From assembly GCA_036785375.1 (NCBI GenBank), contig JAWMAR010000070.1, positions 4,836,001-4,900,000 of the forward strand: a stretch of 64,000 nt of DNA, written 5' to 3'. The notes beneath the pieces are model-generated. The model saw only the letters and a program-made list of their open reading frames with translations. It did not search any database and had not been told where the DNA came from. A program made the translations under genes and the position numbers. The DNA is from Leucoraja ocellata (taxonomy: Eukaryota). This document shows positions 3,386 to 62,686 of this stretch, piece after piece (the first letter of the stretch is position 1; each line of letters opens with the position of its first letter).

Positions 3386-3434
3386 ACAACTCAAACGCAG
3401 TGCAGGGACCAAACCGATCCAACGTAGCCGAGAC

Positions 3435-3531
3435 ATGGCGGTGGGACAGGGAGAATTCACCCACCAGAGACGGCCCAGATCCAGGGGAACAGTCGCTCTG
3501 TTGGTTCTTGTCGCTGTTGGTCTCACACCAG
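3435..3531 (+). CDS. Gene A leader exon MAVGQGEFTHQRRPRSRGTVALLVLVAVGLTP(G)
   Basis: ATG in acATGg context; basic n-region then hydrophobic h-region; phase-1 donor CAG|gtaaat. It joins the V exon start GSRG, which completes the signal peptide. Confidence 0.85.
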
Positions 3532-6500
3532 GTAAATCGTTGTTTTACAAAATGCTCTGTTCTGAGGAATTATTTACCAACGCCTTGAATTATTTGTAAC
3601 CACAGACCTCTCTGTACTGTGTGGGGAGCTGATGATCAATTGCTCAACACTCGTTAGTTCCTGTAGAGACTTCCATCAGCGGTTGTTGTCGTGTTGTGTG
3701 CAGCCAAGTCGCACACAGCTAGCTCCCTGTGGAGAAGGGAGATAACTATCTACAGCTTGCCTTGCCTTGTGGACCTCATTGAAACTTACTGAATAGTGAA
3801 AGGCCTGGATAGAGTGGATGGGGTGAAGATGTTTACACTAGTGGGAGAGTCTAGGACCAGAGGTCGCAGCCTCAGAATTAAAGGGTGTTGCTTTAGGAAG
3901 GAGATGTGGAGGAATTTTGTGAGACAGAAACTGTGGAATTCATTGCCACAGACTGTGGAGGCCATCAATAGGTATTTCTAAGGCCGAGATGGATAGATTC
4001 TTGATCAGTACTGGTGTCAGGAGTCCTGGGGAAAAGGTAGGAGGATTTAGTTGAGAGGGAAAGATAGATCAGCCATAATTGAATGGAGGAGAGTAGACTT
4101 GATGGGCCAAATGGCCTAATTCTGCTCCTAGTACTAATGAACTTATGATCTGTTCTTCAGAATTATTTGCCAGCACCTTGAATTATTTTGAGCCACAGAG
4201 CAGACTACTGGGCTACGAACTGCTAAAGATAAAATGCTTGCAGACTTGTTCTTCCCTGCACTAATGACTGTTGTGATGCTGTGTGCTCAGTGACTTGGCA
4301 GCAGATCAGCTAAATGCATTACCCCTTCCATATCGCTTGACTTCCTCCCTCCCTGACTGTGGGTCTGAAGAAAGATCTTGACCCGAAACGTCAGCCATTC
4401 CTTCTCTCCAGAGATGCCCCCTGACCCGCTGCGTTACTCCAGCATTTAGTGTCTATCAAAGGCACACGGCACTCCCTCCACGCACTGCAATGGGAAATGT
4501 TGAACCTAAACCTTAGCACATTCAAAGAAAAAACCTGTGGAAGCCAGCCATTGGGAACAGGCGTCATCTCAAATGAGGAAGCACCAGAGTGAATTTAGCA
4601 TTTGGAGAAGTTGCGGTAATCTCTCCCTTCTGAGAAAAACCAGCTGCCTTACAACAGACTCTGCTGCTCGAGCTGTTCTACACACTTTGCTTTCCCCAGC
4701 CTCTGAGTTCTCGTTCAAAGCATTTGTCTTGTGGCTTGTGAGCTGACCTGGACTGATGTGATGATGTGTCTCCACCCCAGCTCCTGAATCTGCAGAGTTT
4801 CACATGTGTTAGAGTCATAGAGTGATACAGTGTGGAAACAGGCCCTTCGGCCCAACTTGCCCACACCGGCCAACATGTCTCAGCAACACTAGTCCCACCT
4901 GTCCATGTTTGGTCCAAGTCCTTTCAAATCTGTCCTATCCATGTATCCAGAGGGTCCCACCCTCTCCGGAGACTAAGAAAAGCAGGTCTCCCTACTGTTC
5001 ACCTAAGGTCCTTCTACAGGGGCACCATCGAGAGTATACTGACCCACGGCATCGCTTCCTGGTTTGGGAGCTGCAAGGCTTATGAAGAAAAACAACTTAA
5101 CAGGATCGTGAAGACAGCCAGTAGGATCATTGGTGCTCCACTCCCTTTCCTGTTGGAGATCTATCAGAAGCGTAACATCAGCAGAGCCATCTCCATTATA
5201 AAGGACCCCTATCATCCATCACACCACATCTCACTCACTCCCAATTGGGCCCCGCGAGTAAGGGGGCCCCGTGCAGTGTAATCTACTCTCGGCTCAGGTA
5301 GATCTACCCCGGGTGGAGAGAGAGTAGAGGGGTGGAGGGGGAAGAAGGGGGTAGACGGGGAGGGGGGTGTGAGGGGGAATGGAGAAGGGGGAGAGGGGAA
5401 GGTGGGTCGTTCGCTCACGGCAGCGCTCCTGCCCCTCCAGTCGCCGTGCTTCACGCACACAGCCCTGGCTCCACCCCTCTCTCTCCCCGGGGAGAGGCGG
5501 TGAACAATACACGGAGGGCTGGGCCGGGGGTTGGGGCATCGTATATAAACATCGGCCTCAACTCACACCCGTCTGCCCGGACCCCGGCATCCCTCTCCCT
5601 CCCTTCTCTCCTTCCCTCCCTCCTTCCGCTCTTTTCCTTTCTCTCATTCGCTCCATCCCTTCTTTCTCTACTTCCCTCCCTCCCTCCCACACACACACAC
5701 ACATAACGCACAGACAACTAACACACACAACTAAGTTAAGATGGGGTAGAAACCTTTTCACCCAGAGTTGTGAATTTGTAGAATTCTCTACCACAGAGGG
5801 CAGTGGAGGCCAATTCACTGGATGTATTCAAGAGAGAGTTAGATTTAGCTCTTAGGGCTAATGGAATCATGGGATAACGGGAGCAAGCAGAACTGGGCAG
5901 TGCCGGCTCGAAGGGCCGAATTGTCTCCTCCTGCGCCTATTTTCTATGTTTATATGTTTCTATGAATCGTCACCTATCCACTTTCTCCAGAGATAGTTCC
6001 TGTCCAGTTTAAGGTTGTGACCTCAATAACGGGTAGGCCATTGAGGACTCAGATGAGGAAATATCTTTTCACCCAGAGAGTTCCTCTTTCTCCAGAGATA
6101 GTTCCTGTCCCGTTGTGTTACTCCGGCACTTTGTGTCCTTTTGTACATTAACCAGCATCTGCAGTTCCTTGTTTCTACTAGTTCAATGGGGAAGTGGGTT
6201 GTAGTGAGATTGAACACAGGGTGGGTCAGAGTGAGTGACAGGTTGGCTTCCTGTCACATGACCACCACTCAGGTCAAGCCACACCCACATGGAAGGAGGA
6301 TCTGGGCGCCAGGTAGATTCAGAAGCAGTGTTCAAGAAGGAACTGCAGATGCTGGAAGATAGATATCGCAGTGGAGTAGACAAAGTGTTCAAGAAGGAAC
6401 TCAGTTCTGCTTTCACTGGAACTTGGGGAACAATCCCGGTGAAATGGGAATTAACACCAGCGGGAAAAGCATTAAAGTGCAACAGGATCTATGCAGAAGA

Positions 6501-9500
6501 AGAGAGACACAAAATGCTGGAGTAACTCAGCGGGACGGGCAGCATCTCTGGGGAGAAGGAAATGGGCGAGGAAACATCACCCGTCGGTTTCTCCAGAGAT
6601 GCTGCCTGTCCCGCTGAGTTACTCCGGCTCTTTGTGTCTATCTTTGGTGTAAACCAGCACCTGCAGTTCCTTGCTACACATGATCTATGCGAAACCATGA
6701 ACCTGTCTGAACAGCACAAATGACATGTTTTTTATTGTTAAACCTCAGCTTGTGTTACTGCAGTGTGAGTGATCTTTCATCATTAATGTGCCCACAGGGT
6801 CAAGGGGAATAACTGAACCCGAGGAGGTGAGGGGAGAGTTGGGGCAGTCGGTCACAGTGGAATGTCAGTATGATCGGAAATACAAAGACAACGACAAGCT
6901 ATGGAGTAAAGGTGATTATTTCGTTCCATCTTCTACCGTGGTTTCTACTGATCACCCACAACAAGGGAGAACATCGATGACTGATGACAAATCACAACGG
7001 ATAGTTTCAGTCACCATCGACAACCTGGAGAAGAGTGATGAAGGACTCTACTGGTGTGTGATAGTAAAGGGAAATCATTTGCCCATTGTATCGACCTCCA
7101 TCTCATTGAAGGTTTCTGAAGGTAAGTTGCCGATCTCTCCTCACTCTCCCAGATGTGAAAATTCCAGCCTGTGAATTCCCGGCCTCGGTCCTGACGGTGA
7201 CTCGGTGCCACATCCCCGGGGGTCGCGGTAAGGGGGTTGGGTGGATAACTCACTTACTGGGGTCCTGGCCCGTGGGGCCACACCAAGAGCTCACTGTCCC
7301 AGGAGCAATATGGGGGGGGGGGGGGGGACTGTCAGACACCAGCCCCACGGAAGGTCCCATCTACCGGCGGTTCTGTTGCTGACGGCTCATTTCCACGAAG
7401 ACGATCGCTCCGGGACCAGAACCTCTGCCGCCCCCTCACTGGGGCAGGTGGTGGGAAACCCGGGTGGAGATAGGAGTCAATGGGGGAGGGGGCAGGTTAG
7501 TAGAAGATACTTAAAATTAGAGAACCAACGTTCAAACCGTTGGGTTGTAAACTACCTGAGCCCAATATGAGGTGCGGTTCCTCCAATTTGCATGTGGCCT
7601 CACTCTGGCAATGGAGGAGGCCCAGGACAGAAAGGTCAGTGTGGGAATGGGAAGGGACATGGACAGGGTTGGCAACCGGGAGATCAAGAATGGTCCCGAC
7701 CCGAAAAGGACACCTATCCATTTTCTCCAGAGATTCCGCCTGATCCGCCGAGTTACTCCAGCACTTTGTGTCTATCTTTGGTGTAAACCAGCACCTGCAG
7801 TTCCTTTCTACACATGATCTATGCGAAACCATGAACCTGTCTGAACAGCACAAATGACATGTTTTTTATTGTTAAACCTCAGCTTGTGTTACTGCAGTGT
7901 GAGTGATCTTTCATCATTAATGTGTCCACAGGGTCAAGGGGAATAACTGGACCCAAGGAGGTGAGGGGAGAGTTGGGGCAGTCGGTCACTGTGGAATGTC
8001 CGTATGGTCAGGAATACATTGACAACAAGAAGCAATGGAGGAAAGGTTATTATTACACACTATCTGATACCGTGGTTTCTACTGATGACCCACCACAAGG
8101 GAGAACATCGATGACTGATGACAAAACACAACGGATAGTTTCAGTAACCATCGACAACCTGGAGAAGAGTGATGAAGGATACTACTGGTGTGTCATAGTA
8201 CGATGGAACTTCAGTGAAAAGACCTCCATCTTATTGACGGTTTCTGAAGGTACGTTGACGATCTCTCCTCACTCTCCCAGAGGTGAACATTCCAGCCTGG
8301 GAATTCCCGGCCTCGGTCGTGAGGGTGACTCGGTGCCTCATCCCCGGCGGTCGTGGGGGGGGGGGGGGAGCTCATCAATGGGGACCGGCGGTCCTGCTGC
8401 TGGCGGCTCATTTCCCCAAACACGATCGCTCCAGGACCAGAACACATGGTGCCCCCTCACTGAGACGGGGGGGGGGGGGGGGAGAGATCTGCCCCCTCAC
8501 CCTCTCCCCCTGCCCGTCACTGTCACACCCACCACGCACACAACATCTGAAGAAGGGTCCCAACCTTAAACATCATCTATTCATTCCTTCCACGGATGCT
8601 GCCTGACCTGCTGAGTTACTCCAGCACTTTGTGTTTTGCTCAAGATTCCAGCACCTGCAATTCCTTGTGTCTCACAAACTTTGGTGAATCATGAGCTCAG
8701 TTTATTGTTGGCGTCTGTACTGAGGTACAGGGAAAAGCTTTTACCATGTTTCCAATGAGGGCCAAGTCATTGTGTATTTTCAGGTGGAGATTGACCGGTT
8801 CTCAATTAGTACGGGTGTCAAGCGATATGGGGAGAAGGCAGGAGAATGGGGTTAAGAGGGAGAGATAGATCAGCCATGATTGAAAGGCGGAATAGACTCA
8901 ATGGGCCAAATGGCCTCAATCTGCCCCTATCACTTATGAACTAATGAACTAAGAATCCTCATGAGATGAGTGATATAGACTTTACACTGAGTCACACAAA
9001 CTGTACAAGATGAGATACTCAACGGGTCGGGCAGCTTCTGTGGAGAGAGAACGAGAGTTAATGTTTCAGGTAGATACCTCCAACCAAATTGCATTATTTC
9101 CAATTCAGTCCGCGTAATGAAAATAGTCCATGGATCCTCCCGCTCCCAAGTTCTTCTCCAATGTAGAAGACATGTGCCTAACTCTAGCAGCAGGCAGATA
9201 ACACAGCCTGTGGGACTCTGAAGGGCATGAAAGAAGTCTCTGAATGCTTGCGACAATCTGGTGGCATCTTAATGGGTGAGCCTCCGGTCTAGATCAAGAG
9301 GCTTCGTCCATCTATGGTGGCCTCAGAAGGATCTTTGCTCAAATGTATGGATTGGGATTTGAACCCAGGAATCTCCCCACACAGAGCAAGAGCACTCCCG
9401 ACTGAGGCATCTCCCACACATCACTAAAGTGGCACAGAACGTGATTTCAGACATTTTTTTATTTATTTTATTTTATTTTTTTAATTTTTATTAGCAGTAC

Positions 9501-12500
9501 AGTAAATCACATTAATACATCGCATATATCTTATTACATTATGTTGTACCACTTCATTTTTTGAGCTTTAAAAAAGAAAGAAATAAAATAAATAAGAAAA
9601 GTAAGCAAGAATCGTGAAGGTGCAGGAAAGTGTTGGGAGAAAAGAACCCCTTAGGGAAGGAATTAGAGAAGGAAGCAAAGAAAATAAATAAGACCCTAGA
9701 ATGAAAAGAAAAAAAGGAAAAAAGGAAAGTCAGTCGCTCTATTGTAACACAAAACTCCGCAAAAAAGGATATACCAACCATGTTTTTATTAAAAATTTCT
9801 TTTATACCCCCCATTACCAGGTCCTGGTAGCCTTTATATTTTAATTTATTATTGCACCTTAGCTTGTAATAGTTCCATAAATGCAGACCACGTCTTTTGG
9901 AAGTGATCTGCTATACCTGCTAGGAGGAGACTCATCTCTTCCAAGTGTAATGTTTCGAACATGTTTGAAATCCACATTTTTGTTGTTGGTATTGGAGCAT
10001 TTTTCCAAAATTTAAGTATAAGCTTTTTTCCGATTATTAGCCCATAATTAAGTAAGTTATTTTGAAACATATTTAATTCTGGGTTACCTTCCGATATTCC
10101 AAAAATGATCAATTCTACTCTAGGTAGAAGTTTTGTTTTAAATAATTTTGTAAAGATTTCAAATATTTAGTTCCAGAATTTTTGAATTTTTATACAGAAA
10201 ACAAAAGAGTGCGCTATGTTAGCTTCTTGTACCTGACATTTATCACAAATGGGTGAGACATTGGGGAAGAGTTTATTTATTTTAGTTTTTTAATAATATA
10301 GTCTGTGTAATGTTTTATATTGGATTAGAGTATGTCGTACGTTGATCGAGCATTTATGCACATATAATAAGTGTTTATCCCAGCTCTCTTTTGAAATTTT
10401 TATAGCTAATTCTTGTTCCCAATCTCTTCTAATATTATCTGTTGTAGGTATTTCTATATTCAATATAATATTATATAAGTATGATATTAGATTTGCTGAT
10501 TCAGCCTTTATCTTCATGGCTTCATCTAATAAGTCTGGGGGCATATTATAATAGTCTTTTGTACATTTTTTCAGATAATTACGGATTTGAAGATATTTAA
10601 AATATTGATTATTTTTCAAGTTATATTTCAGTTGTAATTGTTGAAATGGTAATAATTTCCCTAATTTATACAGGTCTCCGAGCGTTTTGATTCCCGTTCT
10701 TTCCCATTGTGTAAATGATTTATCTATAATTGAGGGTTTAAACGAAGGGTTATTGGCTATTGGCATTAGCAGAGATAGATTTCTTAATTTTAAGTTCTGT
10801 TTTATTTGTTTCCAAGTTCTAATTGTATTATGTACTATTGGATTTTTATTATAATATTTGTTATTCAAATTCGTTGGTGAGAGGAGAGTCGCGCCTGTAT
10901 TACCAGGAGCGCAGTCCTCTCTCTCCATTATAATCCAGTCCACCTGCTGGGCAGAGTTGTCCAGCAGGTGAATCATATTTTTAATATTTACCGCCCAATT
11001 ATAGTACATAAAGTTAGGGAGCGCTAGACCACCCATCTCTTTTGGTTTACTGAGGTGTGCTCTTTGTATTCTGTGGGATTTATAATCCCATATAAAGTTT
11101 GTGATGTCTGAGTCTAATTTTTTGAAAAAAAATGTTGGAAGATATATTGGAATTGATTGAAATAAATATAGGATTTGTGGTAAAAAAAATCATTTTTATA
11201 GCATTTATTCGACCTATTAAAGACATAGGCAGCGTTTTCCAGAATTTAATTAGATTGTTTAATTTCTTAAGTAAGGGGCTATAATTAGCATTAAACATAC
11301 CGTGGTAATTTCTAGTGATTTCAATTCCTAAATATTTAAATTTTTCTGTAGCTATTTTAAAGGGGAATTTCAAAAGATGTGTTGAGTCTTTCGGTTTTAT
11401 TGACATAATTTCACTTTTGTTCCAGTTTATTCTGTATCCTGAGAAAGATCCGAAATCCTCGATTAGCTTTAATATGTTTGGTATACTGATTTGGGGTTTT
11501 GTGATATATAGTAATACATCGTCTGCATATAAGGATATTTTGTTATTTGAATGTTTTGTATTATACCCATAGATGTCAGGATGTGTTCTAATATTTTCAG
11601 CTAAGGGTTCAATTACTAGAGCGAATAGTAGCAGTGATAATGAACACCCTTATCTATTGCCCTTTGTTAATTGAAATTTCGTAGATACTATATATTATTA
11701 GTTAATATTCTAGCCGTGGGTTTGTTATATAATAATTTTATCCATGCGATAAAGCTCTCTCCCATTTGAAATTTTTGCAATACTTTAAACATATAATCCC
11801 ATTCTACTTGATCAAACGCTTTTTCTGCGTCCAATGAAATGATAGATAACTCTTGTTCTTGAGATTTGTGAGAGTGCATTATGTTAAGCAGACGTCTCAG
11901 GTTATTAAATGAGTGTCTCTTAGGTATAAATCCCGTCTGATCCTTATTTATTAATTTACTGACATATTGACTTAATCTTCTAGCTAGTATTTTCACTAAT
12001 ATTTTTTGATCAGTATTTAACAATGCAATAGCTCTGTATGATCCTGGTTCTTCTATATCTTTATCTTTTTTAAGTATTAGTGTGATCGTTGATTCTGCTA
12101 GTGTTTCAGGTAAGATTTGTTCTTTAAAAGCAAATGTATACATTTTCTGTAGACGTGGGGTCACTGTATCGTAAAAACATTTATAAAATTCATTACTGAA
12201 TCCGTCTGGTCCTGGTGTTTTTCCATTATTAAGTGTGTTTATTGTGTCTTCTATTTCCTTAGCTGTAATTTGTGCTCCCAGTTCCTCTTGTTCTTTCAAT
12301 TCTAATTTTGGGAGGTTACAATCGGTCAAAAATTCTGAAGCTTTGTTATTGTCTATTAGCGTTTTCGATGTATATAAGTTCTTATAATATTGAGCAAATC
12401 TTTTATTGATATCCTTAGGTGGTGTTAATAATTCCCCTCTATCTGATTTAATCTTCAAAATTGTATGATCTTTTTCCCGTTTTTTCAATTGGCGTGCCAA

Positions 12501-16997: not shown

Positions 16998-17391
16998 GGA
17001 GGAATTTCTTTAGCTAGAGGATGATGAATCTGTGGAATTCATTGCCACAGGCGGCTGTGGAGGCCAAGTCAATGGATATTTTTAAATTGGAGATTGACAG
17101 GTTTATTCAGGGTGTCAAAGGTTGAGGGGAGAAGGCAGGAGAATGGGATGGAGGGGGAAAGATAGATCATCCATGATTGAATGGCGGAGTAGACTCGATG
17201 GAGCAAATGGCCGAATTCTGCACCTATGTTTGCAGACACGTCTGTACATCCTGACATTCACCCAAAAGACAGCAGAACATAGACTAGAACTCAAAGCTGG
17301 CTTTCCAGAATGTGAACTTTTAACTTTATTACCAAATTAATTGCTGTGGAAAACCCGGTACATTGAATAATGATTAAAATAATCAAACGTA

Positions 17392-30339: not shown

Positions 30340-30370
<31 letters not shown>

Positions 30371-49200: not shown

Positions 49201-51105
49201 GTTTATCCCCAAATTCAAAACATTCTTGTTTGGTAGTTTGGAATAATCTTATAATCTTCTCTGATAGTAATTTATTTAGCTTAAATTTCAGAATTAAAAT
49301 TTTGTTATGTTTATCCATAGTTGGATCTTTAGCATTATCTATATCTAGTTGTCTGATTTGTTCTTCTAATTGTCTTTGTTCATTTTTATTCTTTTTGTTT
49401 TGAAAAGCTTGATACGAGATAATGACTCCTCTAATAAATGCTTTGAAGGATTCCCATAATAAAGTAGGCGAAATATCTGGTGTATCATTTATCTCAAAAA
49501 ATAGATCCATTTGTTTTTTTAGATATATACTCCCTTGTGGGTCTTTCAAAATTTGCGAGTTAAACCTCCAGAACGATGTGTTCATAGAGATTCCTTCCAA
49601 TTTTAAAACAAAAGATAGCGGGGAATGATCTGAAATCGTATTAGTGTGGTATTTAGGGTTAAGAGTATAAGGGATTAGTTTTGAATCCACTAGGAAATAG
49701 TCTATGCGTGAGTATGTTTTATGCACCATTGAATAAAACGAGTATTCCCTTCCAGTCGGGTTCGCGATCCTCCAAACATCTGCTATATTTGTATTTTTTA
49801 TATATGTATTTAAGAGTTCACTAGTTTTAGATTTCCTATTACCTCTTTGTTTTTGCATCGATTTATCTAAATACGGATCTAAAGCACAGTTGAAGTCTCC
49901 TCCAATTATAACATTTTGGTAGTTAGATTCTGCGATTTTATTCAGAATTTTATTAAAAAATTGAGGATTATCAAAATTGGGCGCATATATGTTTACCAAG
50001 GTGATTGGCGTAGCATAAATCTCTCCTGTGACTATAAGGTATCTCCCTTCCTTATCTGATATAATATTCTTTGATTTGAATGGTATTCCTTTGCGAATAA
50101 TAATTGCGGTGCCTCTAGATTTCGATGTGTATGAGGAGTGAAATGTTTGGCCTATCCATTTCGCCCTCAATCTCATCTGGTCTTGATGTTTAAGGTGCAT
50201 TTCTTGAAGAAACGAAATGTCCGTGTTATATGATTTCAACTGAGCTAGCATTTTGCCCCTTTTAATTGGTTCATTACTACCCCTTATATTCCAGCTACAC
50301 AGTGTGATTCCTCCTTTAATGTCCAAAAACGTCATTCACTTTATCTCCACAAGGGTCTCAAACAAGCCGCCCAGACATGGTCATCACCACCTCTGCAACA
50401 ATAAACAGAAGGGCTCGGACCACCCTGCCTCAAGATGCACCAACCACCCGGGCGGCAAGTTCCACTGAGTCTCATGGTTCAACACTTCCAAACAGGTTAG
50501 TAACTCGAAGAGCCAACTCAGCCTCACCTGAGAACAAATTAGTTCAGTTCAATTCAGCTCAGTTTAAAGATACAGCGTGGAAATGGACCCTTTGGCCCAC
50601 CGAGTCCGCTCTGAGCAGCGATCACCCCATACACCAGTTCTGTTCTACACACTAGGGGCAACTTACTATAAACCCGCACGTCTTTGGAATGTGGGAGGAA
50701 ACTGGAGAACCCAGAGTAAACTCTTGCGATCACAGGGAGAACGTACAAACTCTGCACTGACAGCACCGGTATCAGGATCGACCCCGCATCTACTGTGCTG
50801 TGAGGCAGCAACTCTACCGCTGAGCTGACATCTCAATGGGCGAGCCTCATGTCTACATCAAGCGGCTTGGTCCATCTATGGTGGCTTAGGAAGGATCCTT
50901 GCTCAAATCACAGGTTTGGGATTCGAACCAAGAATCTCCCCACACAGAGCAAGATCGCTCCCAACTGAAGCATCTCCCACACGTCACTAAAGTGGCACAG
51001 AACGTGATTATAAACATTTAATGTTCAAAGACTTCATTCACTTTATCTTCACAAGGGTCTCAAACATATCACCCAGATATCCTCACCACTTTGGTGTGTG
51101 TGTGT

Positions 51106-51136
<31 letters not shown>

Positions 51137-53693
51137 TTGCACGGTGGCGCAGTGGTAGAGTTGCTGCCTTACAATGCTTGTAGCGCCGGAGACCCAGGTT
51201 CGATCCCGACTACAGGTGCTGCCTGTACGGGGTTTGTACGTTATCCCCATGACCGCATGGGTTTTCCCTGAGATCTTTGATTTCCTCCAACACTCTAAAG
51301 ACATACAAGTATGTAAGTAGATTGGCTTGGCGTATGTGTCAATTGCCCCTAGTGTGTGTGTAGCCTAGTGTTAGTGTGCGAGGATCGCTGGTCGGTGTGG
51401 ACTCCATGGGCCGTCGGGCCTGTTTCCGCGCTATATCTCAAAATTAAACTAAACTGGATTAAAATATGGTCACCACCACCTCAGGAACCACCACACCCAC
51501 TCTGCCTCTGGAAGCATCGACCACCAGGGACTCCTGGTTCATCGCCTCGACACAGGTCAGTGACTCAAAGTCCCAGTACTTTGAGAAAGCGTGGCTGATC
51601 ACATTCCAGTCCATTGATAAACACTCCTTGGCCCTGACTAAAGTCCCTCTGTCCTTAGTACACCCAGTGGCCCTACCATTGTGAATGTCTACCCTTACAT
51701 CATGCCAAAAACAAATAACGTCACACTTATCATGGTTCAATACCTGCTGGCATTGCTCTGCCCAACATACCAGTTGCTTCTTATCCCTCTGTGGTCTATG
51801 ATTATCGTACTATCCAAAATGAGACAATGTTGATGTAATCTGTAAACTCGTAAATCATACTTCCAACATTAACATCTAAGGCCGGCAGATGGGACTAGTG
51901 TAGATAAGGACATCTTGGTCGGCAATGGGGAAATTGGGTCAAAGGACATGTTTTCGTGATCTATGTCTGACCATCAAAATGAACATCTAAGTTGTTAATG
52001 TAGTCATGGAACACCTCCAAGGAATGGGTGCATGTTGCGATATTAACATCTCACCAATGTCCACGCCAAAATCTTGGATCACACTGAATGATTCCGTGTG
52101 CAATATGATGAAAGAAAATTACCAGCGTTGATCTGTGGTAACTCTGTGTGGAAGTAATAATATTTCATTGGATTTCCAGGGACATCGTGCTGAATGTTCG
52201 CCGTGTTTGGGGTGTGTTACGCTGGGTACTCTTTGGAATTCTGCTTCTCTTCCCGGTTTCCATCAGCTGTGTGACAACTTTGAAAAGGTGAAAGTTTGCA
52301 ATCTCTTTACTCTGATGTTCACATTAAATTCAACTGGAAATGATGGGAATTTACTTTCGATTTGTAGAGATAAAGTGTGGACATACAGCGCCCTCCATAA
52401 TGTTTGGGACAAAGACCCTTCATTTATTTATTTGCCTCTGTATTCCACAATTTGAGATTTGTAATTGAAAAAATCACACGTGGTTAAAGTGCACATTGTC
52501 AGATATTATTAAAGGGTATACAGCCAATCAAGTCCGCGCCGACCAATGATCACCCCGTACACTCGCACTATCCTACACACGAGGGACAATTTACAATTAT
52601 ACAGAGGCCAATTAACCTACAAAACTACACGTCTTTGGATTGTGGTAAGAAACCGGAGCACCTGGATAAAACCCACGCTGTCAGAGGCAGAACATACAAA
52701 CTCCGTACAGACAGCACCCGTAGTCATGATCAAACCCGGGTCTCTGGCGCTGTAAGGCAGCAACTCTACCGCTGCGCCACTGTGCCGCCCTGGGTCATTT
52801 CCTCGGGTAAAATTTGATGGTGGAGATTATAAACTGTGTTTTAATTGTTATTCAAGGAAAAAAACAGCCAAGACCTTGGAGATGAGGTCGGCAGTGGTGG
52901 AGGAAGGAGAGGAACAGCGCCGGTGAGCTGGCTGGGTGAGGCCTCACCTCGCATGGAGACGGCCGTGGGAGGCGAGGGGAAAAGGGTGCGTTGGTGGGTC
53001 GAGGTGTGGGCGGAGTGCGAGTGGGCTGCTGGAGGCCCTGCAGCAGCCGGTGGATCGGGTGCCGCTGGAGGTCCTGCAGAGGTCGGGGATGAGCGTACTG
53101 TTCGGACACGGCCTGCAGCGGCACGGAGCGGTGGTGGAGGCACCGACAACATCGCCAGGCCAGGCCGACCCCTGCAACTCCCACCCAGTGCCGTCTCCAT
53201 GACAACGGGCCTTTAAGCCCAAAATAAAATGGGCCTTTAAGCCCAGTTTGATGTTTAAGAATATAAGATACTGCCAGTAATGTGGCAACTCTTGTGTACT
53301 GCATCATATAATCTGCTATTAATACTCTTGTTCTTAGCTTCAGCTGTGCTTATATCAAGTAAGATTTTTACTGAATTCTATACAAAAGAAATGTCACTGT
53401 ACCCATGTGCATGAGACAATAAAGTATCATTGAACCATTGAACAATGGGGATATAAAAACGGTTAAATGATTACAAGTATTGAACTGTGGACACGTGTTA
53501 GAAGAATAAGATAAAAATGAAGGGTAATCGTTATATCAATATTGTTATTCTGACGGAATGACGCCCAATAATCATCGTTTAGCTTTTCAGGGCCAGAGAG
53601 GGTGTTCACCAGTTGGAGATGTACAAATCTCATCACCTTGCCCCTACAGCATCACCACACCACACCTATGTCCAATCTACCTTGACCACTTGA
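40127..53693 (+). CDS. Gene C: paralogous two-V receptor, 363 aa, join(40127..40223,43494..43817,44624..44941,50354..50495,52180..52287,53591..53693)
   Basis: Same exon set and phases; 1092 nt open; the TM exon has an in-frame 3-nt deletion. Confidence 0.85.
41652..41929 (+). mobile_element. Rex1/Babar-like LINE fragment, gene C copy
   Basis: Paralog of 4935-5232. Confidence 0.75.
43494..43817 (+). CDS. Gene C Ig V1 exon (type beta)
   Basis: AG/GT bounded, 324 nt. Confidence 0.95.
44624..44941 (+). CDS. Gene C Ig V2 exon (type gamma, identical to gene A V2)
   Basis: AG/GT bounded, 318 nt. Confidence 0.95.
46152..50317 (-). mobile_element. Same L1 insertion in gene C (ORF2 in three pieces: 599, 268 and 395 aa)
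   Basis: Identical position to the A copy; SWNIRG...SDH endonuclease, LYADD RT, C-terminal CDKC...H...C knuckle. Confidence 0.95.
50354..50495 (+). CDS. Gene C stalk exon
   Basis: Paralog of the A stalk, phase 1 to 2. Confidence 0.8.
52180..52287 (+). CDS. Gene C transmembrane exon (DIVLNVRRVWGVLRWVLF...)
   Basis: 108 nt, in frame; juxtamembrane Cys replaced by Arg. Confidence 0.85.
53591..53693 (+). CDS. Gene C putative cytoplasmic exon
   Basis: Paralog of the A tail exon, TGA at 53691-53693. Confidence 0.55.
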
Positions 53694-55363
53694 GGAGGAA
53701 TTTCTTTAGCCAGAGGGTGATGAATCTGTGGAATTCATTGCCACAGGCGGCTGTGGAGGCCAAGTCAATGGATATTTTTAAATTGGAGATTGACAGGTTT
53801 ACTCAGGGTGTCAAAGGTTGAGGGGAGAAGGCAGGAGAATGGGATGGAGGGGGAAAGATAGATCATCCATGATTGAATGGCGGAGTAGACTCGATGGAGC
53901 AAATGGCCGAATTCTGTACCTATGTTTGCAGACACGTCTGTACATCCTGACATTCACCCAAAAGACAGCAGAACATAGACTAGAACTCAAAGCTGGCTTT
54001 CCAGAATGTGAACTTTTAACTTTACTACCAATTGAATTGCTGTGTGAAACCCTGCACATTGAATAATGATTAAAATAATCCAATGTAATAAAAGATGGCT
54101 GAATTTTTGTCATAAAGTCATAAGTGATAAGAGTAGAATTAGTTTGGTTTAGAGATAGCGCATGGAAACAGGCCCATTGATCCACCGAGTCCATGCCGAC
54201 CACTGATCACCTGTACACACTATGTTTAAGAAGGAACAGCACATGCTGGAAAAGCGAAGGTAGACAAAAACGCTGAGTTTCTCCAGCATTGTTGTCTACC
54301 TGTACACACACTAGTTCTGTTATCCCACTTTCTCATCCATTCCCTACACATTTGCGACAATCTTGCAGAGGTATTTAACCTACAAACTCGCATGGATTAG
54401 GGATGTGGGAGGAAGCCGGAGCACCTGGAGGAAACCCATGAGGTCACAGGGAGAACATTCAAACTCCACACAGACAGCACCCGTAGAGAGGATCGAACCC
54501 GGGTCTCTGGCGCTGTGAGGCAGCAGCAAACCGCTGCACCACCGTGCCGCCCTGAAGAGAGAGAGCAGGCTTGTGAGAGCAGACAGCAGAGCAGCAGGCC
54601 AGCTAAATGCCTCATCAGAGTGACAGCACCTTCAGCTACTTTAGACACAGTGTTTAGGACAAACAGAATCAAGGGATATGGGGAGAGAGCAGGAACTGGG
54701 TACTGATTTAGGTTGATCTGCCACGATCATATTGAATGGTTCAAATGGCCGAATGGCCGAATGGCCTACTCCAGCGCCTATTTTCTATGCTTCTATGTTT
54801 CCATAGCAGAGCTCCCTCAGTACAACTCTCCCTCCGTGCTCGGCGTTCTGGAGTGGGAACTGAACCAACATCTCTCTAACTCACTCAATAGTTTTCACCC
54901 ACTGAGCTTGCACTGCAGGACCCAACACTGGGCCTTGGTGTGGCTCAGTTAGCGTGGTAAAGTCACACAGGACTCCTGCTAGAAACAGCGTGCGAAATGT
55001 TGCACTTAGACCACAGGTCTCACATTGAAAACCATGTGAAACCCAACCGCTTCTGAAAGGAAGCACCGCGATGACTTTTCATGTTTGCATTCAAGGAATC
55101 TGTGGCAACCTCTTTAGTTTAGCCTATTATAGTCATGTGTACAGAGGTGCAGTGAAAAGCTTTTCTGATGTATGATATCCAGTCAGCGAAAACACTATAC
55201 GATTACAATCAAGCCATCCACAGGATACAGGTACAGGATAATCCGACCTCTACAATGTAATCTCACAGAGGCTGATGGGTACATGGAGGGAGCATGTCCA
55301 GAGAAGGTAGTGTAGACAGGTACTAGTAACAACATTGAAAAGCATAAGGACATGGTATGTGGA

Positions 55364-55990: not shown

Positions 55991-57342
55991 TTTGATAGGA
56001 AAGGTATGTAGGGACATGGGTCAAATGCAGGCCTGGTTTTTATGGTGGTTCAGCCATAAAGTTGTTGCCTTACATGGTATAACAGCGCCAGATAACCAGG
56101 TTCGATCCTGGCTATAGGTGCTTGTCTGTACATAGTCTGTACTTTCTCCCAGTGACCTGCATGAGTTTTCCCTGAGAACTTCAGCTTCCTCCCACACTCC
56201 AAAGACGTACAGGTTTGTAGGTTAATTGGGTTGGTGTAAATGTAAACATTTGTGTTGCTGTGCGGGGATCACTGGACGGTGCGGACACAGTGGGCCGGAT
56301 GGCTTGTTTCCCCACTGTATCTCTAAACTAAACTAAAGAGGGACCAGCGTACATGGGACATCTTGATCGGCATTAGGCAAGCTGTTTCCCTGCTGTATCA
56401 CTCTATGATTTTATGAATCACATCCTCAAACTCAGCTTTACCCGGTCTCCGATGCTCAAGTATGTGAATTGTCTTTCAAGGAGTTTATCTGGTGACGTGA
56501 GTGGACTTATCTGATCGCGTTTGGCAATAGACAATAGACAATAGGTGCAGCAGTAGACCATTTGGCCCTTCGAGACAGCATCACCATTCAATGTGATCAT
56601 GGCTGATCATCCACAATCAGTACCCCGTTCCTACCTTCTCCCCATATCCCCTGACTCCGCTATCTTTAAGAGGCCTATCTAGCTCTCTCTTGAAAGCATC
56701 CAGAGAACCGGCCTCCACCGCTCTCTTAGGCAGAGAATTCCACAGACTCAGAACTGTCTGGGTGAAAAAGTGTTTCCTCATCTCCGTTCCTTTGGTGTCT
56801 TTTTTCTCCTGGGTATTGTTTCAACAGATGAGAAGCTGAGGAAGGCTGGACAAATTAGTGACGCGCATTTTGTGGTGGGTAAACAGATCACAAGTTCACA
56901 CATTCCAGGAGTAGAATTTGGCCATTCGGCCCATCCAGTCTACTCTGCCATTCAAACATGGCTGATCTCTGCCTCCTAATCCCATACAAGTTCAGACACA
57001 GTGTGCCCGCATTTGGGGGAGGGGCTTGAGGGGGTGGGCAAGGGAATGTTTGCGGTGGTGGACAGAGCGCCAGTCAAGTGGGCAAACGTCACCAGGATGA
57101 AGCAGAGCTTCGAGGAGATGCTCCAATCCAGGCAACTGGAGAGTGTTGCAGCTCACTCCTGATAGGGGCATTGTCCGTGGTGAGGAGGCTGGGGGAGGTG
57201 GTAAGTGAGTCACCAAGTTAAGTCTTGAACCACTGCAAAGTCATGTCCTGTTAATCGGAAATTGACTGACTTCAGTTGTGAATGAGGAAGAGGACAACTC
57301 AAACGCACTGCAGGGACCAAACCGATCCAACGTAGCCGAGAC

Positions 57343-57439
57343 ATGGCGGTGGGACAGGGAGAATTCACCCACCAGAGACGGCCCAGATCCAGGGGAACAG
57401 TCGCTCTGTTGGTTCTTGTCGCTGTTGGTCTCACACCAG
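57343..57439 (+). CDS. Gene D leader exon
   Basis: Same peptide as the A leader; phase-1 donor. Confidence 0.85.
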
Positions 57440-60400
57440 GTAAATCGGTGTTTTACAAAATGCTCTGTTCTTTAGAATTATTTACCAACGCCTTGAATTA
57501 TTTGTAACCACAGACCTCTCTGTACTGTGCTGATGATAAATTGCTCAACACTCGTTAGTTCCAGTAGAGACTTCCATCAGCGGTTGTTGTCGTGTTGTGT
57601 GCAGCCAAGTCGGGAGATAACTATCTACAGCTTGCCTTGCCTTGTGGACCTCATTGAAACTTACTGAATAGTGAAAGGCCTGGATAGAGTGGATGGGGTG
57701 AAGATGTTTACACTAGTGGGAGACTCTAGGACCAGAGGTCGCAGCCTCAGAATTAAAGGGTGTTGCTTTAGGAAGGAGATGAGGAGGAATTTTGTGAGAC
57801 AGAAACTGTGGAATTCATTGCCACAGACTGTGGAGGCCATCAATAGGTATTTCTAAGGCCGAGATGGATAGATTCTTGATCAGTACTGGTGTCAGGAGTC
57901 CTGGGGAAAAGGCAGGAGGATTTAGTTGAATGGGAAAGATAGATCAGCCATGATTGATTGGAGGAGAGTAGACTTGATGGGCCAAATGGCCTAATTCTTC
58001 TCCTAGTACTAATGAACATGATCTGTTCTTCAGAATTATTTGGCAGCATCTTGAATTATTTTGAGCCACAGAGCAGACTACTGGGCTACGAGCTGCTAAA
58101 GATAAAATGCTTGCACACTTGTTCTTCCCTGCACTAATGACTGTTGTGATGCTGTGTGCAGCCAAATTGTACACAGCTAACTCCCTGTAGAAAATGACCC
58201 CACAGCTGGCCTTGTTGATTATGGGTGTAGGGGTAACTCTTGCCCCCAGAACAGAGAGTTTGCTCCACTATTCTGGTGCAAACTATCTCCAGGTGAACTT
58301 TCTCAGTGACTTGACAGCAGATCAGCTAAATGCTTTACCCCTTGCATATCTCTTGACTTCCTCCCTCTCTGACTGTGGGTCTGAAGAAAGGTCTCGGCCC
58401 GAAACGTCACCCATTCCTTCTCTCCAGAGATGCCCCCTGACCTGCTGCGTTACTCCAGCATTTAGTGTCTATCAAAGACACACGGCACTCCCTCCACGCA
58501 CTGCAATGGGAAATGTTGAACATAAACCTTAGCACATTCAAAGAAAAAACCTGTGAAAGCCAGCCAATGGGAACAGGCGAGCATCTCAAATGAGGAAGCA
58601 CCAGAGTGACTGTCCAATTTAGCATTTGGAGAAGTTGTGGTAATCTCTCCCTTCTGAGAAAAACCAGCTGCCTTACAACAGACTCTGCTGCTCGAGCTGT
58701 TCTACACACTTTGCTTTCCCCAGCCTCTGAGTTCTCCTTCAAGGCATTTGTCTTGTGGCTTGTGAGCTGACCTGGACTGATGTGATGATGTGTCTCCACC
58801 TCAGCTCCTGAATCTGCAGAGTTTCACATGTGTTAGAGTCATAGAGTGTTACAGTGCGGAAACAGGCCCTTCGGCCCATCTTGCCCACACCGCCCAACAT
58901 GTCCCAGCAACACTAGTCCCACCTGTCCACGTTTGGTCCAAGTCCCTTCAAACCTGTCCTATCCATGTATCCAGAGGGCCCCACCCTCTCCGGAGACTAA
59001 GAAAAGCAGGTCTCCCTACTGTTCACCTAAGGTCCTTCTACAGGGGCACCATCGAGAGTATACTGACCCACGGCATTACTTCCTGGTTTGGGAGCTGCAA
59101 GGCTTATGAACAAAAACAACTTAACAGGATAGTGAAGACAGCCAGTAGGATCATTGGTGCTCCACTCCCTTTCCTGTTGGAGATCTATCAGAAGCATAAC
59201 ATCAGCAGAGCCATCTCCATTATCAAGGACCCCTATCATCCATCACACCACATCTTCTCCATTCTGCCATCTGGGAAGAGGTACAGGAGCATCAGCTGCA
59301 AAACCAGCAGGATGCTCCACAGCTTCTTCCCACAGGCAATAAGACTGGTTAACGGACTGTGTCCCCTCCCCATACATCATACACCAACACATCTAACCTC
59401 GCCTATACTTTGACAGCTAGGCACCTGTCAAAGCAAAGCCACTGTTCGGTCTGAATGCCTGTTTTTATTTCAATTTTTAGGCCTATTTTAGATATGTTAC
59501 TTTTAATTTTAAATCTATATGTATTTATTCTGTTTTTATTAACTGCACTGACGGGAACTGATTGAGAAACAATTTTTAGTTTCTTCTGTGTATGTAAGTT
59601 AAAATGACATTAAAGTAAATACTGAATACTGAATACCCAGGGCCGGCCTTAAGCCGATTGGACCGATTGCTCCCAATTGGGCCCCGCGAGTAAGGGGGCC
59701 CCGCGCCAGTGTAATCTACTCTCGACGGGTAGATCTACCATGGGTGGAGAGAGAGTAGAGGGGTGGAGGGGGAAGAAAGGGGTAGACGGGGAGGGGGGTG
59801 TGAGGGGGAATGGAGAAGGGGGAGAGGGGGAGGTGGGTCGTTCGCTCACGGCAGCGCTACTGCCCCTCCAGTCGCCGTGCTTCACGCACACAGCCCCGGC
59901 TCCACCCCTCTCTCTCCCCGGGGAGAGGCGGTGAACAATACACGGAGGGCTGGGCCGGGGGTTGGGGCATCGTATACAAACATCGACCTCAGCTCACACC
60001 CGTCTGCCCGGACCCCGGCATCCCTCTCCCTCTCTTCTCTCCTTCCCTCCCTCCTTCCGCTCTTTTCCTTTCTCTCATTCGCTCCATCCCTTCTTTCTCT
60101 ACTTCCCTCCCTCCCTCCCACACACACACACATGACGCACAGACAACTAACACACACAACTAAGTTAAGATGGGGTAGAAACCTTTTCACCCAGAGAGTT
60201 GTGAATCTGTAGAATTCTCTACCACAGAGGGCAGTGGAGGCCAATTCACTGGATGTATTCAAGAGAGAGTTAGATTTAGCTCTTAGGGCTAATGGAATCA
60301 TGGGATTACGGGAGCAAGCAGAACTGGGCAGTGCCGGCTCGAAGGGCCGAATCGTCTCCTCCTGCGCCTATTTTCTATGTTTATATGTTTCTATGAATCA

Positions 60401-62686
60401 TCATCTATCCACTTTCTCCAGAGATAGTTCCTGTCCAGTTTAAGGTTGTGACCTCAATAACGGGTAGGCCATTGAGGACTCAGATGAGGAAATATCTTTT
60501 CACCCAGAGAGTTCCACTTTCTCCAGAGATAGTTCCTGTCCCGTTGTGTTACTCCGGCACTTTGTGTCCTTTTGTACATTAACCAGCATCTGCAGTTCCT
60601 TGTTTCTACTAGTTCAATGGGGAAGTGGGTTGTAGTGAGATTGAACACAGGGTGGGTCAGAGTGAGTGACAGGTTGGCTTCCTGTCACATGACCACCACT
60701 CAGGTCAAGCCACGCCCACAGGGAAGGAGGATCTGGGCGCCAGGTAGATTCAGAAGCAGTGTTCAAGAAGGAACTGCAGATGCTGGAAGATAGATATCGC
60801 AGTGGAGTAGACAAAGTGTTCAAGAAGGAACTCAGTTCTGCTTTCACTGGAACTTGGGGAACAATCCCGGTGAAATGGGAATTATCACCAGCGGGAAAAC
60901 CATTAAAGTGCAACAGGATCTATGCAAAAGAAGAGAGACACAAAATGCTGGAGTAACTCAGCGGGACGGGCAGCATCTCTGGAGAGAAGGAAATGGGTGT
61001 GGAATCATCACCCGTCGGTTTCTCCAGAGATGCTGCCTGTCCCGCTGAGTTACTCCGGCTCTTTGTGTCTATCTTTGGTGTAAACCAGCACCTGCAGTTC
61101 CTTGCTACACATGATCTATGCGAAACCATGAACCTGTCTGAACAGCACAAATGACATGTTTTTTATTGTTAAAGCTCAGCTTGTGTTGCTGCAGTGTGAG
61201 TGATCTTTCATCATTAATGTTCCCACAGGGTCAAGGGGAATAACTGAACCCGTGGAGGTGAGGGGAGAGTTGGGGCAGTCGGTCAAAGTGGAATGTCAGT
61301 ATGGTCAGGAATACAAGGACAACAGGAAGCTGTGGACTAAAGGTGATTCTTACCAGAAATCTTATATTGTGGATTCTACTGATCACCCACAACGAGGGAG
61401 AACATCGATGACTGATGACAAAAAAGAACGGATAGTTTTAGTCACCATCGACGACCTGGAGGAGAGTGATGAAGGTCTCTACTGGTGTGTGATAGTAAAG
61501 AGAAACGATTCACTCATGGAATTGGCCTCCATCTCATTGAAGGTTTCTGAAGGTACGTTGACGATCTCTCCTCACTCTCCCAGATGTGAACATTCCAGCC
61601 TGTGAATTCCCGGCCTCGGTCCTGACGGTGACTCGGTGCCACATCCCCGGGGGTCGCTGTAAGGGGGTGGGGTGGATAACTCACTTACTGGGGTCCCGGC
61701 CCGTGGGGCCACACCAAGAGCTCACTGTCGCCGGAGCAATATGGGGGGGGGGGGGGGACTGCCAGACACCAGCCCCACGGAAGGTCCCATCTACCGGCGG
61801 TTCTGTTGCTGACGGCTCATTTCCACGAAGACGATCGCTCCGGGACCAGAACCTCTGCCGCCCCCTCACTGGGGCAGGTGGTGGGAAACCTGGGTGGAGA
61901 TAGGTGTCAATGGGGGAGGGGGCAGGTTAGTAGAAGATACTTAAAATTAGAGAACCAACGTTCAAACCGTTGGGTTGTAAACTACCTGAGCCCAATATGA
62001 GGTGCGGTTCCTCCAATTTGCATGTGGCCTCACTCTGGCAATGGAGGAGGCCCAGGACAGAAAGGTCAGTGTGGGAATGGGAAGGGACATGGACAGGGTT
62101 GGCAACCGGGAGATCAAGAATGGTCCCGACCCGAAAAGGACACCTATCCATTTTCTCCAGAGATTCTGCCTGATCCGCCGAGTTACTCCAGCACGTTGTG
62201 TCTGTCTTTGGTGTAAACCAGCACCTGCAGTTCCTTGCTACACATGATCTATGCAAAACCATGAACCTGTCTGAACAGCACAAATGACATGTTTTTTTAT
62301 TGTTAAACCACAGCTTGTGTTGCTGCAGTGTGAGTGATCTTTCATCATTAATGTGTCCACAGGGTCAAGGGGAATAACTGGACCCGAGGAGGTGAGGGGA
62401 GAGTTGGGGCAGTCGGTCACTGTGGAATGTCAGTATGGTCAGGAATACAGTGACTACAAGAAGCTGTGGAGTAAAGGTTATTATTACCGGTCATCTTCTA
62501 TCGTGGTTTCTACTGATGACCCACGACGAGGGAGAACATCGATAAGTGATAACAAAACACAACGGATAGTTTCAGTAACCATCGGCAACCTGGAGAAGAG
62601 TGATGAAGGACGCTACTGGTGTGCGATTGCAAAGGGAACATTTTCAAGCGATGAAAGGACCTCCATCTCATTGACGGTTTCTGAAG
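57343..62686 (+). CDS. Gene D (partial): leader 57343..57439, V1 61229..61552, V2 62363..62686; stalk, TM and tail lie beyond the window
   Basis: Intact leader and two V exons. The window ends at ...ttcactttatctcca, immediately before the stalk acceptor seen in A-C. Confidence 0.85.
58975..59635 (+). mobile_element. Rex1/Babar-like LINE 3' end in gene D intron 1
   Basis: LRRLRKAGL...FYRGTIESILT...LPSGKRYRS...SFFPQAIRL; (tactgaa)n tail. Confidence 0.8.
59638..60130. mobile_element. hAT-like non-autonomous element end (CAGGGCCGGCC...) with purine/pyrimidine-rich interior; terminus deleted in the A and C copies
   Basis: Terminal motif typical of hAT MITEs; partner TIR not found. Confidence 0.4.
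61229..61552 (+). CDS. Gene D Ig V1 exon (type beta)
   Basis: AG/GT bounded, 324 nt. Confidence 0.95.
62363..62686 (+). CDS. Gene D Ig V2 exon (type delta)
   Basis: AG/GT bounded, 324 nt. Confidence 0.95.

Follow-up and report, generated by a model that had tools for sequence, protein, structure and literature searches.

Four tandem two-V-domain receptor genes

We analysed a 64-kb stretch of skate genomic DNA (contig JAWMAR010000070.1, positions 4,836,001 to 4,900,000 of the forward strand; hereafter the window), which contains no N bases and carries four tandem genes, A to D, resembling the polymeric immunoglobulin receptor (pIgR) and the CD300 receptors. Each gene has a leader exon and two intact exons for V-set domains (V1 and V2; the exons are called A1, A2 and so on). 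Genes A, B and C additionally have exons for a stalk, an arginine-bearing transmembrane (TM) segment and a short tail, giving six-exon models, and everything downstream of V2 in gene D lies beyond the window end. The V domains form a mosaic: over a tract of 209-215 bp that begins and ends inside the V1 exon, the four genes group differently from the sequence on either side. To obtain the six-exon models, a protein of Leucoraja erinacea, XP_055510911.1 (P0002), was placed on the window by tblastn and the borders were then read. The V exons were found by a border pattern search, and the analysis proceeded exon by exon. The exons are as follows.

3435-3531, + strand: gene A leader exon, 97 nt, phase 1 donor (ATG..CCAG/GTAAAT), 94% to P0002 residues 1-35 (tblastn)
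6798-7121, + strand: gene A V1 exon, type alpha, V-set, 324 nt, Pfam V-set E=1.5e-14
7932-8249, + strand: gene A V2 exon, type gamma, 318 nt, same sequence as C2
13664-13805, + strand: gene A stalk exon, Ser/Thr/Pro-rich (tblastn, border reading)
15484-15594, + strand: gene A TM exon with Arg residues (tblastn, border reading)
16164-16233, + strand: gene A tail exon, KKTAKTLEMGSAVVEEGEEQRR then stop
20397-20493, + strand: gene B leader exon, 91% to P0002 (tblastn)
26885-27208, + strand: gene B V1 exon, type alpha, 324 nt, Pfam V-set
27937-28260, + strand: gene B V2 exon, delta CDR3 with gamma-like C'-C'' segment, 324 nt
29586-29739, + strand: gene B stalk exon, 154 nt
31204-31314, + strand: gene B TM exon
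31883-31952, + strand: gene B tail exon
40127-40223, + strand: gene C leader exon, 100% to P0002 residues 1-33 (tblastn)
43494-43817, + strand: gene C V1 exon, type beta, 324 nt, Pfam V-set
44624-44941, + strand: gene C V2 exon, type gamma, 318 nt
50354-50495, + strand: gene C stalk exon
52180-52287, + strand: gene C TM exon, 108 nt
52857-52926, + strand: gene C tail exon
57343-57439, + strand: gene D leader exon (tblastn)
61229-61552, + strand: gene D V1 exon, type beta, 324 nt
62363-62686, + strand: gene D V2 exon, type delta, 324 nt

In the pattern search all eight V exons are open, with AG/GT borders and phase 1 at both ends, and each encodes one V domain, the arrangement expected of genes of the pIgR/CD300 type; A2 and C2 measure 318 nt and the remaining six 324 nt. 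The TM sequence, which reads ..RVWGVLRWVLFGILLLF.., bears arginine, and the tail that follows (KKTAKTLEMGSAVVEEGEEQRR, about 23 residues) lacks a tyrosine motif. The tail exons of A, B and C end KKTAKTLEM.SAVVEEGEEQRR followed by a stop. At 154 nt the stalk exon of B exceeds those of A and C by 12 nt, and the TM exon of C is short by 3 nt (DIVLNVRRVW versus DIVLNIVCRVW), which gives it one arginine more. The TM exons end AAAAG/GTGA (15590-15600, 31310-31320 and 52283-52293), so that read-through of the donor would meet a stop after two codons; the homologue P0002 runs on past the TM exon into the tail exon, and spliced and unspliced forms are both possible.

Family membership

When seven of the domains were submitted to Pfam (C2, which equals A2, was left aside), all seven matched V-set (PF07686) at 48-54.6 bits (gathering cut-off 26). 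Among the solved structures nearest to A1, the 16 top-ranked rows were all chains of pIgR/secretory component or of CD300/CMRF35-like proteins. The top pIgR match reached E=8e-29 over the whole chain, with domain 5 as the best stretch, and CD300/CLM-1 reached E=7e-16. In an exhaustive HMMER search the closest protein to A1 was P0002, named 'polymeric immunoglobulin receptor-like', which has three V domains. No returned protein is encoded in the window itself, the highest V identity by tblastn being 83%; leader identities of 94-100% put the source among skates near Leucoraja and Amblyraja. Relatives from sharks, rays and basal ray-finned fishes are named 'pIgR-like' or 'CMRF35-like molecule' by NCBI and have 2, 3, 4 or 5 V domains. 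The V-set scores, the solved-structure matches and the named relatives agree with an earlier interpretation of this DNA from its letters alone (the sequence-only reading), which took the genes for non-rearranging, multigene, two-V-domain receptors of the pIgR/CD300 kind.

V domains of CD300 and pIgR typically carry a second intradomain disulfide between the C and C' strands. Only the two canonical cysteines occur in each of the eight domains of the window, without the extra C-C' pair, which is present in the ray and shark relatives P0003, P0004 and P0011. True pIgR is a single-copy transcytosis receptor with a long cytoplasmic tail that bears sorting signals; here there are four tandem genes, with about 23 residues past the TM segment. 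A basic TM segment and a short tail without a tyrosine motif are the usual marks of an activating paired receptor, and the window genes combine arginine in the TM segment with a short, tyrosine-free tail and have relatives that bear an immunoreceptor tyrosine-based inhibitory motif (ITIM). The same V types occur with an uncharged TM segment and an ITIM-like tail in P0157 (L. erinacea), P0156 (Rhinoraja longicauda) and P0011 (Hemitrygon akajei). On these features genes A to D would be activating-type two-V-domain pIgR/CD300-like receptors, a function predicted from sequence. P0155, P0156 and P0157, from Rhinoraja and Leucoraja and outside the window, have three or four V domains, uncharged TM segments and ITIM-like tails; P0155 has both an uncharged and an arginine-bearing TM segment and may be a read-through gene model.

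V-domain types and their pairings

Two V1 types and two V2 types, each with its own motif, are present in the exons where the sequence-only reading had placed them: alpha in A1 and B1, beta in C1 and D1, gamma (IVRWNFSEK) in A2 and C2, and delta (KG.FSSDERTS) in B2 and D2. Read by these motifs, the four genes show all four pairings (A alpha/gamma, B alpha/delta, C beta/gamma and D beta/delta), again as had been described. The gamma V2 exons have 318 nt and a long interspersed nuclear element (LINE) downstream, and the delta exons have 324 nt and an empty site, as also described.

A1 and C1 differ at 28 of 107 residues (38 nt) and A2 and C2 at none of 105 (0 nt), in two genes that are otherwise near-identical over about 17 kb, as had been noticed. 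Within the types, A1 and B1 differ at 15 residues (16 nt), C1 and D1 at 21 (26 nt), and B2 and D2 at 19 (25 nt). The exon tree places the V1 slot and the V2 slot each in one group (support 97/97) and recovers (A1,B1) at 96/96 and (C1,D1) at 92/92; A2 equals C2, and B2 and D2 are left unpaired. These groupings, together with the site patterns below, rule out congruent trees, and the earlier claim that no single duplication tree fits both V1 and V2 holds.

The motifs are as quoted, but the types are not monolithic. In complementarity-determining region 1 (CDR1), C1 is nearest to D2 (2 nt) and stands 5 nt from D1. B2 joins A2 and C2 in the C'-C'' segment (3 nt), where D2 has a segment of its own, and joins D2 in CDR3 (2 nt). 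N-glycosylation sequons occur in the CDR3 of gamma (NFS; 8196-8222) and of beta (NDS; 43770-43790) and are absent from those of alpha and delta, so the V types may differ in glycan shielding of the CDR3 loop.

Similar patchworks occur in other assemblies. In P0002 (L. erinacea) the third V domain is 1 difference away from A1/B1 in CDR1 and equals B2 in CDR3-G (0 differences). In P0157 from the same species, the third domain equals A2 in C'-C'' (0 differences) and is 3 differences away from B2 in CDR3, and the second has the CDR1 of B2 (0 differences) and is elsewhere nearest to C1. The second domain of P0159 (Amblyraja radiata) has the gamma CDR3 (3 differences) with the same two-residue gap. 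Because the window belongs to at most one of Leucoraja and Amblyraja, at least one motif type is common to both genera. The same motifs, found in different combinations elsewhere, argue for recurrent exchange in the family and for a mosaic that is not specific to one assembly.

A discordant tract inside the V1 exon

We aligned the four V1-V2 units (A 5238-9456 and its counterparts) and classed the informative sites from A 5740 on. The 106 informative sites in A 5740-9456 comprise 26 that join A with B and C with D (AB/CD), 75 AC/BD and 5 AD/BC, distributed as follows.

A 5740-6872: AB/CD 2, AC/BD 1, AD/BC 5
A 6873-7081: AB/CD 21, AC/BD 1, AD/BC 0
A 7082-9310: AB/CD 0, AC/BD 73, AD/BC 0
A 9311-9456: AB/CD 3, AC/BD 0, AD/BC 0

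The pattern is real and statistically overwhelming. The two main blocks (21:1:0 versus 0:73:0) differ with Fisher p=3.6e-20, and the site series shows 9 pattern switches, compared with a minimum of 28 in 100,000 shuffles. In our own implementation of the pairwise homoplasy index (PHI) test on the four units, 0 of 10,000 permutations were as low as the observed value.

6868-7082, + strand: discordant V1 core, A with B and C with D; putative gene-conversion tract, 209-215 bp

The left limit lies at 6868/6873: B has four singletons in 6816-6867, where A, C and D agree, and the first AB/CD site is 6873. On the right, the last AB/CD site is 7081 and the first AC/BD site 7083. The tract thus falls wholly within the exon (6798-7121), running from just past the first cysteine to the middle of CDR3, and leaves a chimeric CDR3 loop in which KGNH/KRND follows AB/CD and the residues after it follow AC/BD. 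A contiguous tract with another quartet topology, sharp limits and flanks that return to the backbone is what a gene-conversion mosaic looks like, and we infer conversion rather than a double crossover. The incongruent V1 and V2 groupings do require recombination or gene conversion, as the sequence-only reading had concluded. That reading had gone further and proposed the shuffling of whole domains; the breakpoints lie neither at nor beyond the exon borders, and since both limits fall inside the V1 exon the exchanged unit is not a whole domain or exon. In each pair, A/B and C/D, the partners lie physically next to each other. Three AB/CD sites within 62 bp (9383-9444), directly before the LINE insertion point, mark a second short patch candidate, where A-C mismatch rises to 6/95.

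The duplication backbone

Genes A and C lie in two long paralogous units.

548-17444, + strand: duplication unit with gene A, paralogous to 37235-54142
37235-54142, + strand: duplication unit with gene C, paralogous to 548-17444
9457-13624, - strand: LINE in the V2-stalk intron of A (self-BLAST block limits)
46155-50296, - strand: LINE in the V2-stalk intron of C, with open reading frames (ORFs) of 599, 268 and 395 aa and Exo_endo_phos and RVT_1 domains
A 7738-9361 and C ~44430-46059, + strand: near-identical A/C tract, 1 mismatch in 1,624 aligned bases

By self-BLAST the two units are 97.49% identical over 16,942 columns, with sliding identity mostly at 96-99%; self-comparison also shows shorter paralogous units at ~25828-34700 and ~55994-64000. 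The LINE copies of A and C differ at 65 of 4,158 positions, and the insertion is confined to these two genes, the site being empty in B and D (in D at ~63968). Outside two special tracts the A-C background is 295 mismatches in 14,417 positions (2.05%), evenly spread, and against it the region around the V exons reads as follows.

A 6868-7082: 34 A-C mismatches in 215, expected 4.4, P=3.8e-19
A 7083-7737: 8 in 650, expected 13.3, not significant
A 7738-9361: 1 in 1,624, expected 33.3, P=1.2e-13

The excess in the V1 core and the clean 1.6-kb tract imply two changes since the A/C duplication: in one copy the V1 core was replaced, and the surroundings of V2 were, very recently, made identical. 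The second could be a recent homogenising conversion or an assembly collapse.

The first intron of B contains a fossil cassette.

23918-25733, + strand: dead cassette in intron 1 of B, both V exons lost, junction 24985/24986

Here the intron before V1 is joined to the flank after V2, with self-BLAST matches to A 6015-6329, 6494-6796 and 8521-9268 at 91-94%. The dead cassette has the longest branch in both rooted trees. Used as outgroup in the tree of the 3' flank, it yields (A,C) at 98/94 and (B,D) at 87/92. Across the leader region 1.9-2.8% separates A, C and D from one another, with B as an outlier at 4.3-6.1%. The unrooted backbone is AC/BD wherever it is resolved, and the V1 core is the one strongly supported exception. 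We considered whether the AC/BD signal reflects an exchange between B and D and rejected this, the signal being largely backbone plus the recent A=C tract, with only moderate support for the B-D clade (87/92).

The four-gamete argument requires at least one exchange. If the root is on the branch of B, a single conversion into A, from B or from an alpha gene beyond the window, would be enough; a root between AC and BD would take two. A single conversion tract on an AC/BD backbone can formally give all four pairings.

Excess of nonsynonymous change in the V exons

In all six gene pairs, divergence in the V exons is 2.4-5.0 times that in the introns of the same units (Fisher p 1e-5 to 4e-22). By the Nei-Gojobori method, the ratio of nonsynonymous to synonymous divergence (dN/dS) is 4.5 for A1-B1 (15 nonsynonymous and 1 synonymous differences), 4.8 for C1-D1 (24.5 and 1.5) and 1.9 for B2-D2 (21.5 and 3.5). 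Pooled, these three phylogenetically independent contrasts give 61 nonsynonymous to 6 synonymous differences where the expected synonymous share is 0.224 (binomial p=0.0035). The variable residues number 9 of 15 in 23-37, 9 of 15 in 38-52 and 13 of 20 in 88-107, stretches that we take to be CDR1, C'-C'' and CDR3 from the usual V-set layout and the alignments to solved structures, and only 5 of 22 among the first 22 residues. These figures suggest that diversifying selection acts on the CDR-like loops and keeps the exon cores more diverged than the introns. Synonymous divergence (dS) is 0.014 for A1-B1 and 0.022 for C1-D1, equal to the backbone value of about 2%, and 0.068 for A1-C1, as expected if one of the two V1 cores is foreign.

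Evidence from sequencing reads

Sequencing runs were picked by words of C 42400-46150; the best DNA runs, from organism A, hold 0.53-0.65 of these words, and none of the matching runs is recorded as RNA. Four runs were mapped on B 26750-32749 at 93% likeness. One of them, X24, is an oligo-dT RNA run from organism B, possibly another species than that of the window, of which about 5% was read. Its depth in the two read directions was as follows.

26950-27149, V1 exon bin: 1.45 / 2.65
27950-28149, V2 exon bin: 3.33 / 1.40
28150-28349, V2 exon bin: 2.81 / 2.25
29550-29749, stalk exon bin: 1.13 / 0.54
31150-31349, TM exon bin: 1.28 / 0.71
27350-27549, non-repeat intron: 0.09 / 0
28350-28549, 29150-29549, 30150-30349 and 30950-31149, non-repeat introns: 0 / 0 each

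Low depth restricted to exons is weak support for a spliced transcript of gene B or of a close paralogue, as the sequence-only reading would lead one to expect. No exon-exon joint occurs among the matches listed for the mapped reads, which high-copy repeats dominate. The DNA runs consist of short k-mer contigs, which speak neither for nor against the V1-V2 pairings.

Origin of the mosaic

The explanation that we consider probable combines a duplication backbone, one or two short ectopic conversions, a recent homogenisation of A and C, and diversifying selection. The tandem cluster of two-V pIgR/CD300-like genes would have arisen by segmental duplication along an AC/BD backbone, with A and C as a 17-kb pair about 2% apart that has the LINE in common. 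At least one short ectopic conversion of 209-215 bp would then have overwritten the hypervariable core of a V1 exon, so that A would carry the core of its downstream neighbour B and C would keep the core it has in common with D; a root between AC and BD would call for two such conversions. Very recently, a second event would have rendered A and C near-identical over ~1.6 kb around V2, and diversifying selection on the CDR-like loops would hold the exon cores 2.4-5 times above intron divergence.

Several observations weigh against this explanation. The change of partner falls within the same 2 bp (7081/7083) in both pairs, which is unexpected for two independent conversions and fits one event, or a hotspot, better. 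About 25 of the 73 AC/BD sites lie in the G-rich, indel-rich and poorly alignable stretch A 8444-8489, which leaves about 48. The 5' intron weakly gives a third grouping, (B,C) at 84/88 with five AD/BC sites (6111-6793); the simple model has no place for such a third history. PHI restricted to the seven distinct V exons is not significant (1,303/10,000), so exchange finer than the exon core is not proven in the window. The Fisher tests of nonsynonymous versus synonymous differences in single pairs are weak (p 0.05-0.24). Donors of the conversion may lie outside the window. Finally, the pairings rest on one assembly, neither k-mer contigs nor short RNA reads can bridge a V1-V2 intron that is 98-100% alike among the copies, and collapse or polishing could have produced the 1.6-kb A=C tract.

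Taken further, this last point would make the pairings, or the identical tract, the product of paralogue or haplotype switches during assembly or polishing. The likeness of the V1-V2 introns, the abnormal cleanness of the A=C tract and the DNA contigs of run X1, which carry other letters at several places specific to B, all lend it something. We nevertheless hold it very unlikely, because the window has no N, the even ~2% A-C difference on both sides of the tracts means that the assembler kept the copies apart, a core switch of 209-215 bp is far shorter than a long read, and the independently annotated genomes of L. erinacea and A. radiata show like motif mosaics. That the same motifs were instead made independently in A/B and C/D by parallel positive selection, with no exchange at all, agrees with the strong nonsynonymous excess and is nonetheless scarcely credible: 21 shared nucleotide states stand in one sharp 209-bp block, and convergence gives no blocks.

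A more serious possibility, though one we still consider unlikely, is that the alpha, beta, gamma and delta cores are old lineages kept by balancing or diversifying selection, while introns and flanks were repeatedly homogenised, so that the discordance comes mainly from the flanks. It would account for dS values of 0.07-0.185 between V exons of different types, above the intron divergence of 0.7-3.6%, and for live introns that are 96-100% alike in all four genes next to an unhomogenised dead cassette with the longest branch and 6-9% divergence; at least one motif type common to two genera fits it too. Yet A and C have the LINE in common and are collinear over 17 kb at a uniform ~2% divergence, which looks like descent and not homogenisation, the dS of A1-B1 and C1-D1 equals the backbone divergence, and the proposal overlaps with the explanation by conversion, which it still requires. 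The sequence-only reading itself had favoured a dedicated germline system in which V domains are swapped whole, as modules, and a combinatorial repertoire results. All four V1/V2 pairings do occur, the V exons belong to repeated cassettes whose flanks are conserved, the number of V domains in relatives ranges from 2 to 5, and intron 1 of B holds a fossil of cassette duplication and deletion. We regard such a system as improbable: the tract limits are intra-exonic, off the exon and domain borders, one or two events suffice for the window, and we found no feature specific to a dedicated mechanism. What we see matches ordinary ectopic conversion with diversifying selection, as in other tandem immune-receptor families.

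The conversion explanation also has a broader, tentative form, which we would not bet on, in which core-targeted germline conversion is recurrent. Short tracts would be exchanged often among many V cassettes, guided by conserved framework stretches and perhaps by the flanking high-copy repeats and poly-G runs, and CDR1, C'-C'' and CDR3 lineages older than the skate genera would be reassorted combinatorially. Donor and recipient would include V1 with V2 slots and activating with inhibitory genes, and dead cassettes would also serve as donors. If true, the process would parallel, in the germline of an innate receptor family, the pseudogene conversion of chicken immunoglobulin genes. Somatic conversion in this family seems to us extremely improbable.

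Comparison with known receptor systems

Among living lineages with antibody-type adaptive immunity the cartilaginous fish are the oldest, and the germline diversity of their Ig-type receptors is poorly documented at the genomic level. In teleosts, PIGRL, DICP, NILT and NITR are non-rearranging multigene families with CD300/pIgR-like or V-type domains and variable gene content. In the clearnose skate, Cannon et al. [quoted passage not shown] The domains in the window score as V-set, a comparison made by setting the two descriptions side by side. None of the 16 protein clusters looked up bears the name MDIR, and the MDIR family is probably the same as this family or related to it. In PMC3031540, the only source in the literature searched that mentions them, skate MDIRs are multigene activating and inhibitory receptors resembling CD300, TREM and pIgR, a likeness that the window genes and their relatives have in common with them. 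Our literature search found nothing on the genomic organisation of skate CD300/pIgR-like clusters or on conversion in them; the primary MDIR paper and a 2010 review lay outside that search.

In primates, gene conversion between the Ig exons of the paralogues CD300A and CD300C is described in PMC12447643. The window genes resemble that system in their top structural matches, in the 'CMRF35-like' names of relatives, in Ig-exon conversion and in having activating and ITIM-bearing inhibitory forms side by side. Skate genes differ in having two tandem V domains where CD300 has one, and in domains without the extra cysteine pair. Conversion of CD300A/C in primates is read as keeping the pair alike (PMC12447643), whereas in the window the cores are kept unlike. 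With pIgR the genes have in common the top solved-structure matches and the naming of the closest skate proteins as 'pIgR-like', and they differ from that single-copy transcytosis receptor in their tail of ~23 residues, their arginine-bearing TM segment and their membership in a tandem multigene family. The KIR genes of primates, in which recombination aided by transposable elements reshuffles tandem gene segments, offer a further parallel of head-to-tail arrays of Ig-type innate receptors with recombination and selection on the binding domains; transposable elements at breakpoints can be counted as another likeness (PMC7516082). The two Ig families are unrelated, and KIR recombination mostly consists of fusion-gene crossovers with intronic breakpoints, in contrast to the intra-exonic skate tract of ~210 bp.

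The window is a well-resolved further example of a known mode of evolution and reveals no new mechanism. It provides a base-level case in which the limits of a conversion tract are known to 2-6 bp, the cores stand several-fold above the introns, and the motifs recur in other genera. The cluster is suited to measuring how long conversion tracts are, where hotspots lie and how selection acts in a family of innate receptors, and to testing whether activating and inhibitory partners draw on one pool of binding-site variants.

Cassettes and repeats

V1 and V2, each with ~210 bp of upstream and 120-330 bp of downstream sequence, are themselves tandem copies, 85-90% identical, and very few sites are diagnostic of the slot. 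The introns of the cassettes are 96-100% alike across all four genes. A second copy of the cassette start follows the dead cassette, at 25828; the two together suggest an earlier stage with four V exons or a duplicated cassette. Relatives with 2-5 V domains and the dead cassette make cassette gain and loss part of the history of the family.

Runs of 11-18 G lie ~100-230 bp downstream of seven of the eight V exons, and after B2 there is no run of 10 or more; the runs are at the following positions.

7312-7327, 8355-8368, 8467-8482, 27400-27413, 44009-44019: poly-G runs
45047-45064, 45163-45180, 61743-61757, 62861-62888: poly-G runs

Their surroundings are the most indel-rich part of the cassette, and a role for them in recombination is speculation. 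Very high-copy interspersed repeats flank the exons of B (27550-27949, 28550-29149, 29750-30149, 30350-30749 and 31350-31949). DNA-contig depth over these repeats is 1e4-6e5, compared with ~12-36 in the unique parts, and the repeats are abundant in the RNA runs too. One high-copy repeat element begins the repeated V cassette. Further ORFs with RVT_1 lie at 17672-19808, between genes A and B, and at 22265-23338, in intron 1 of B.

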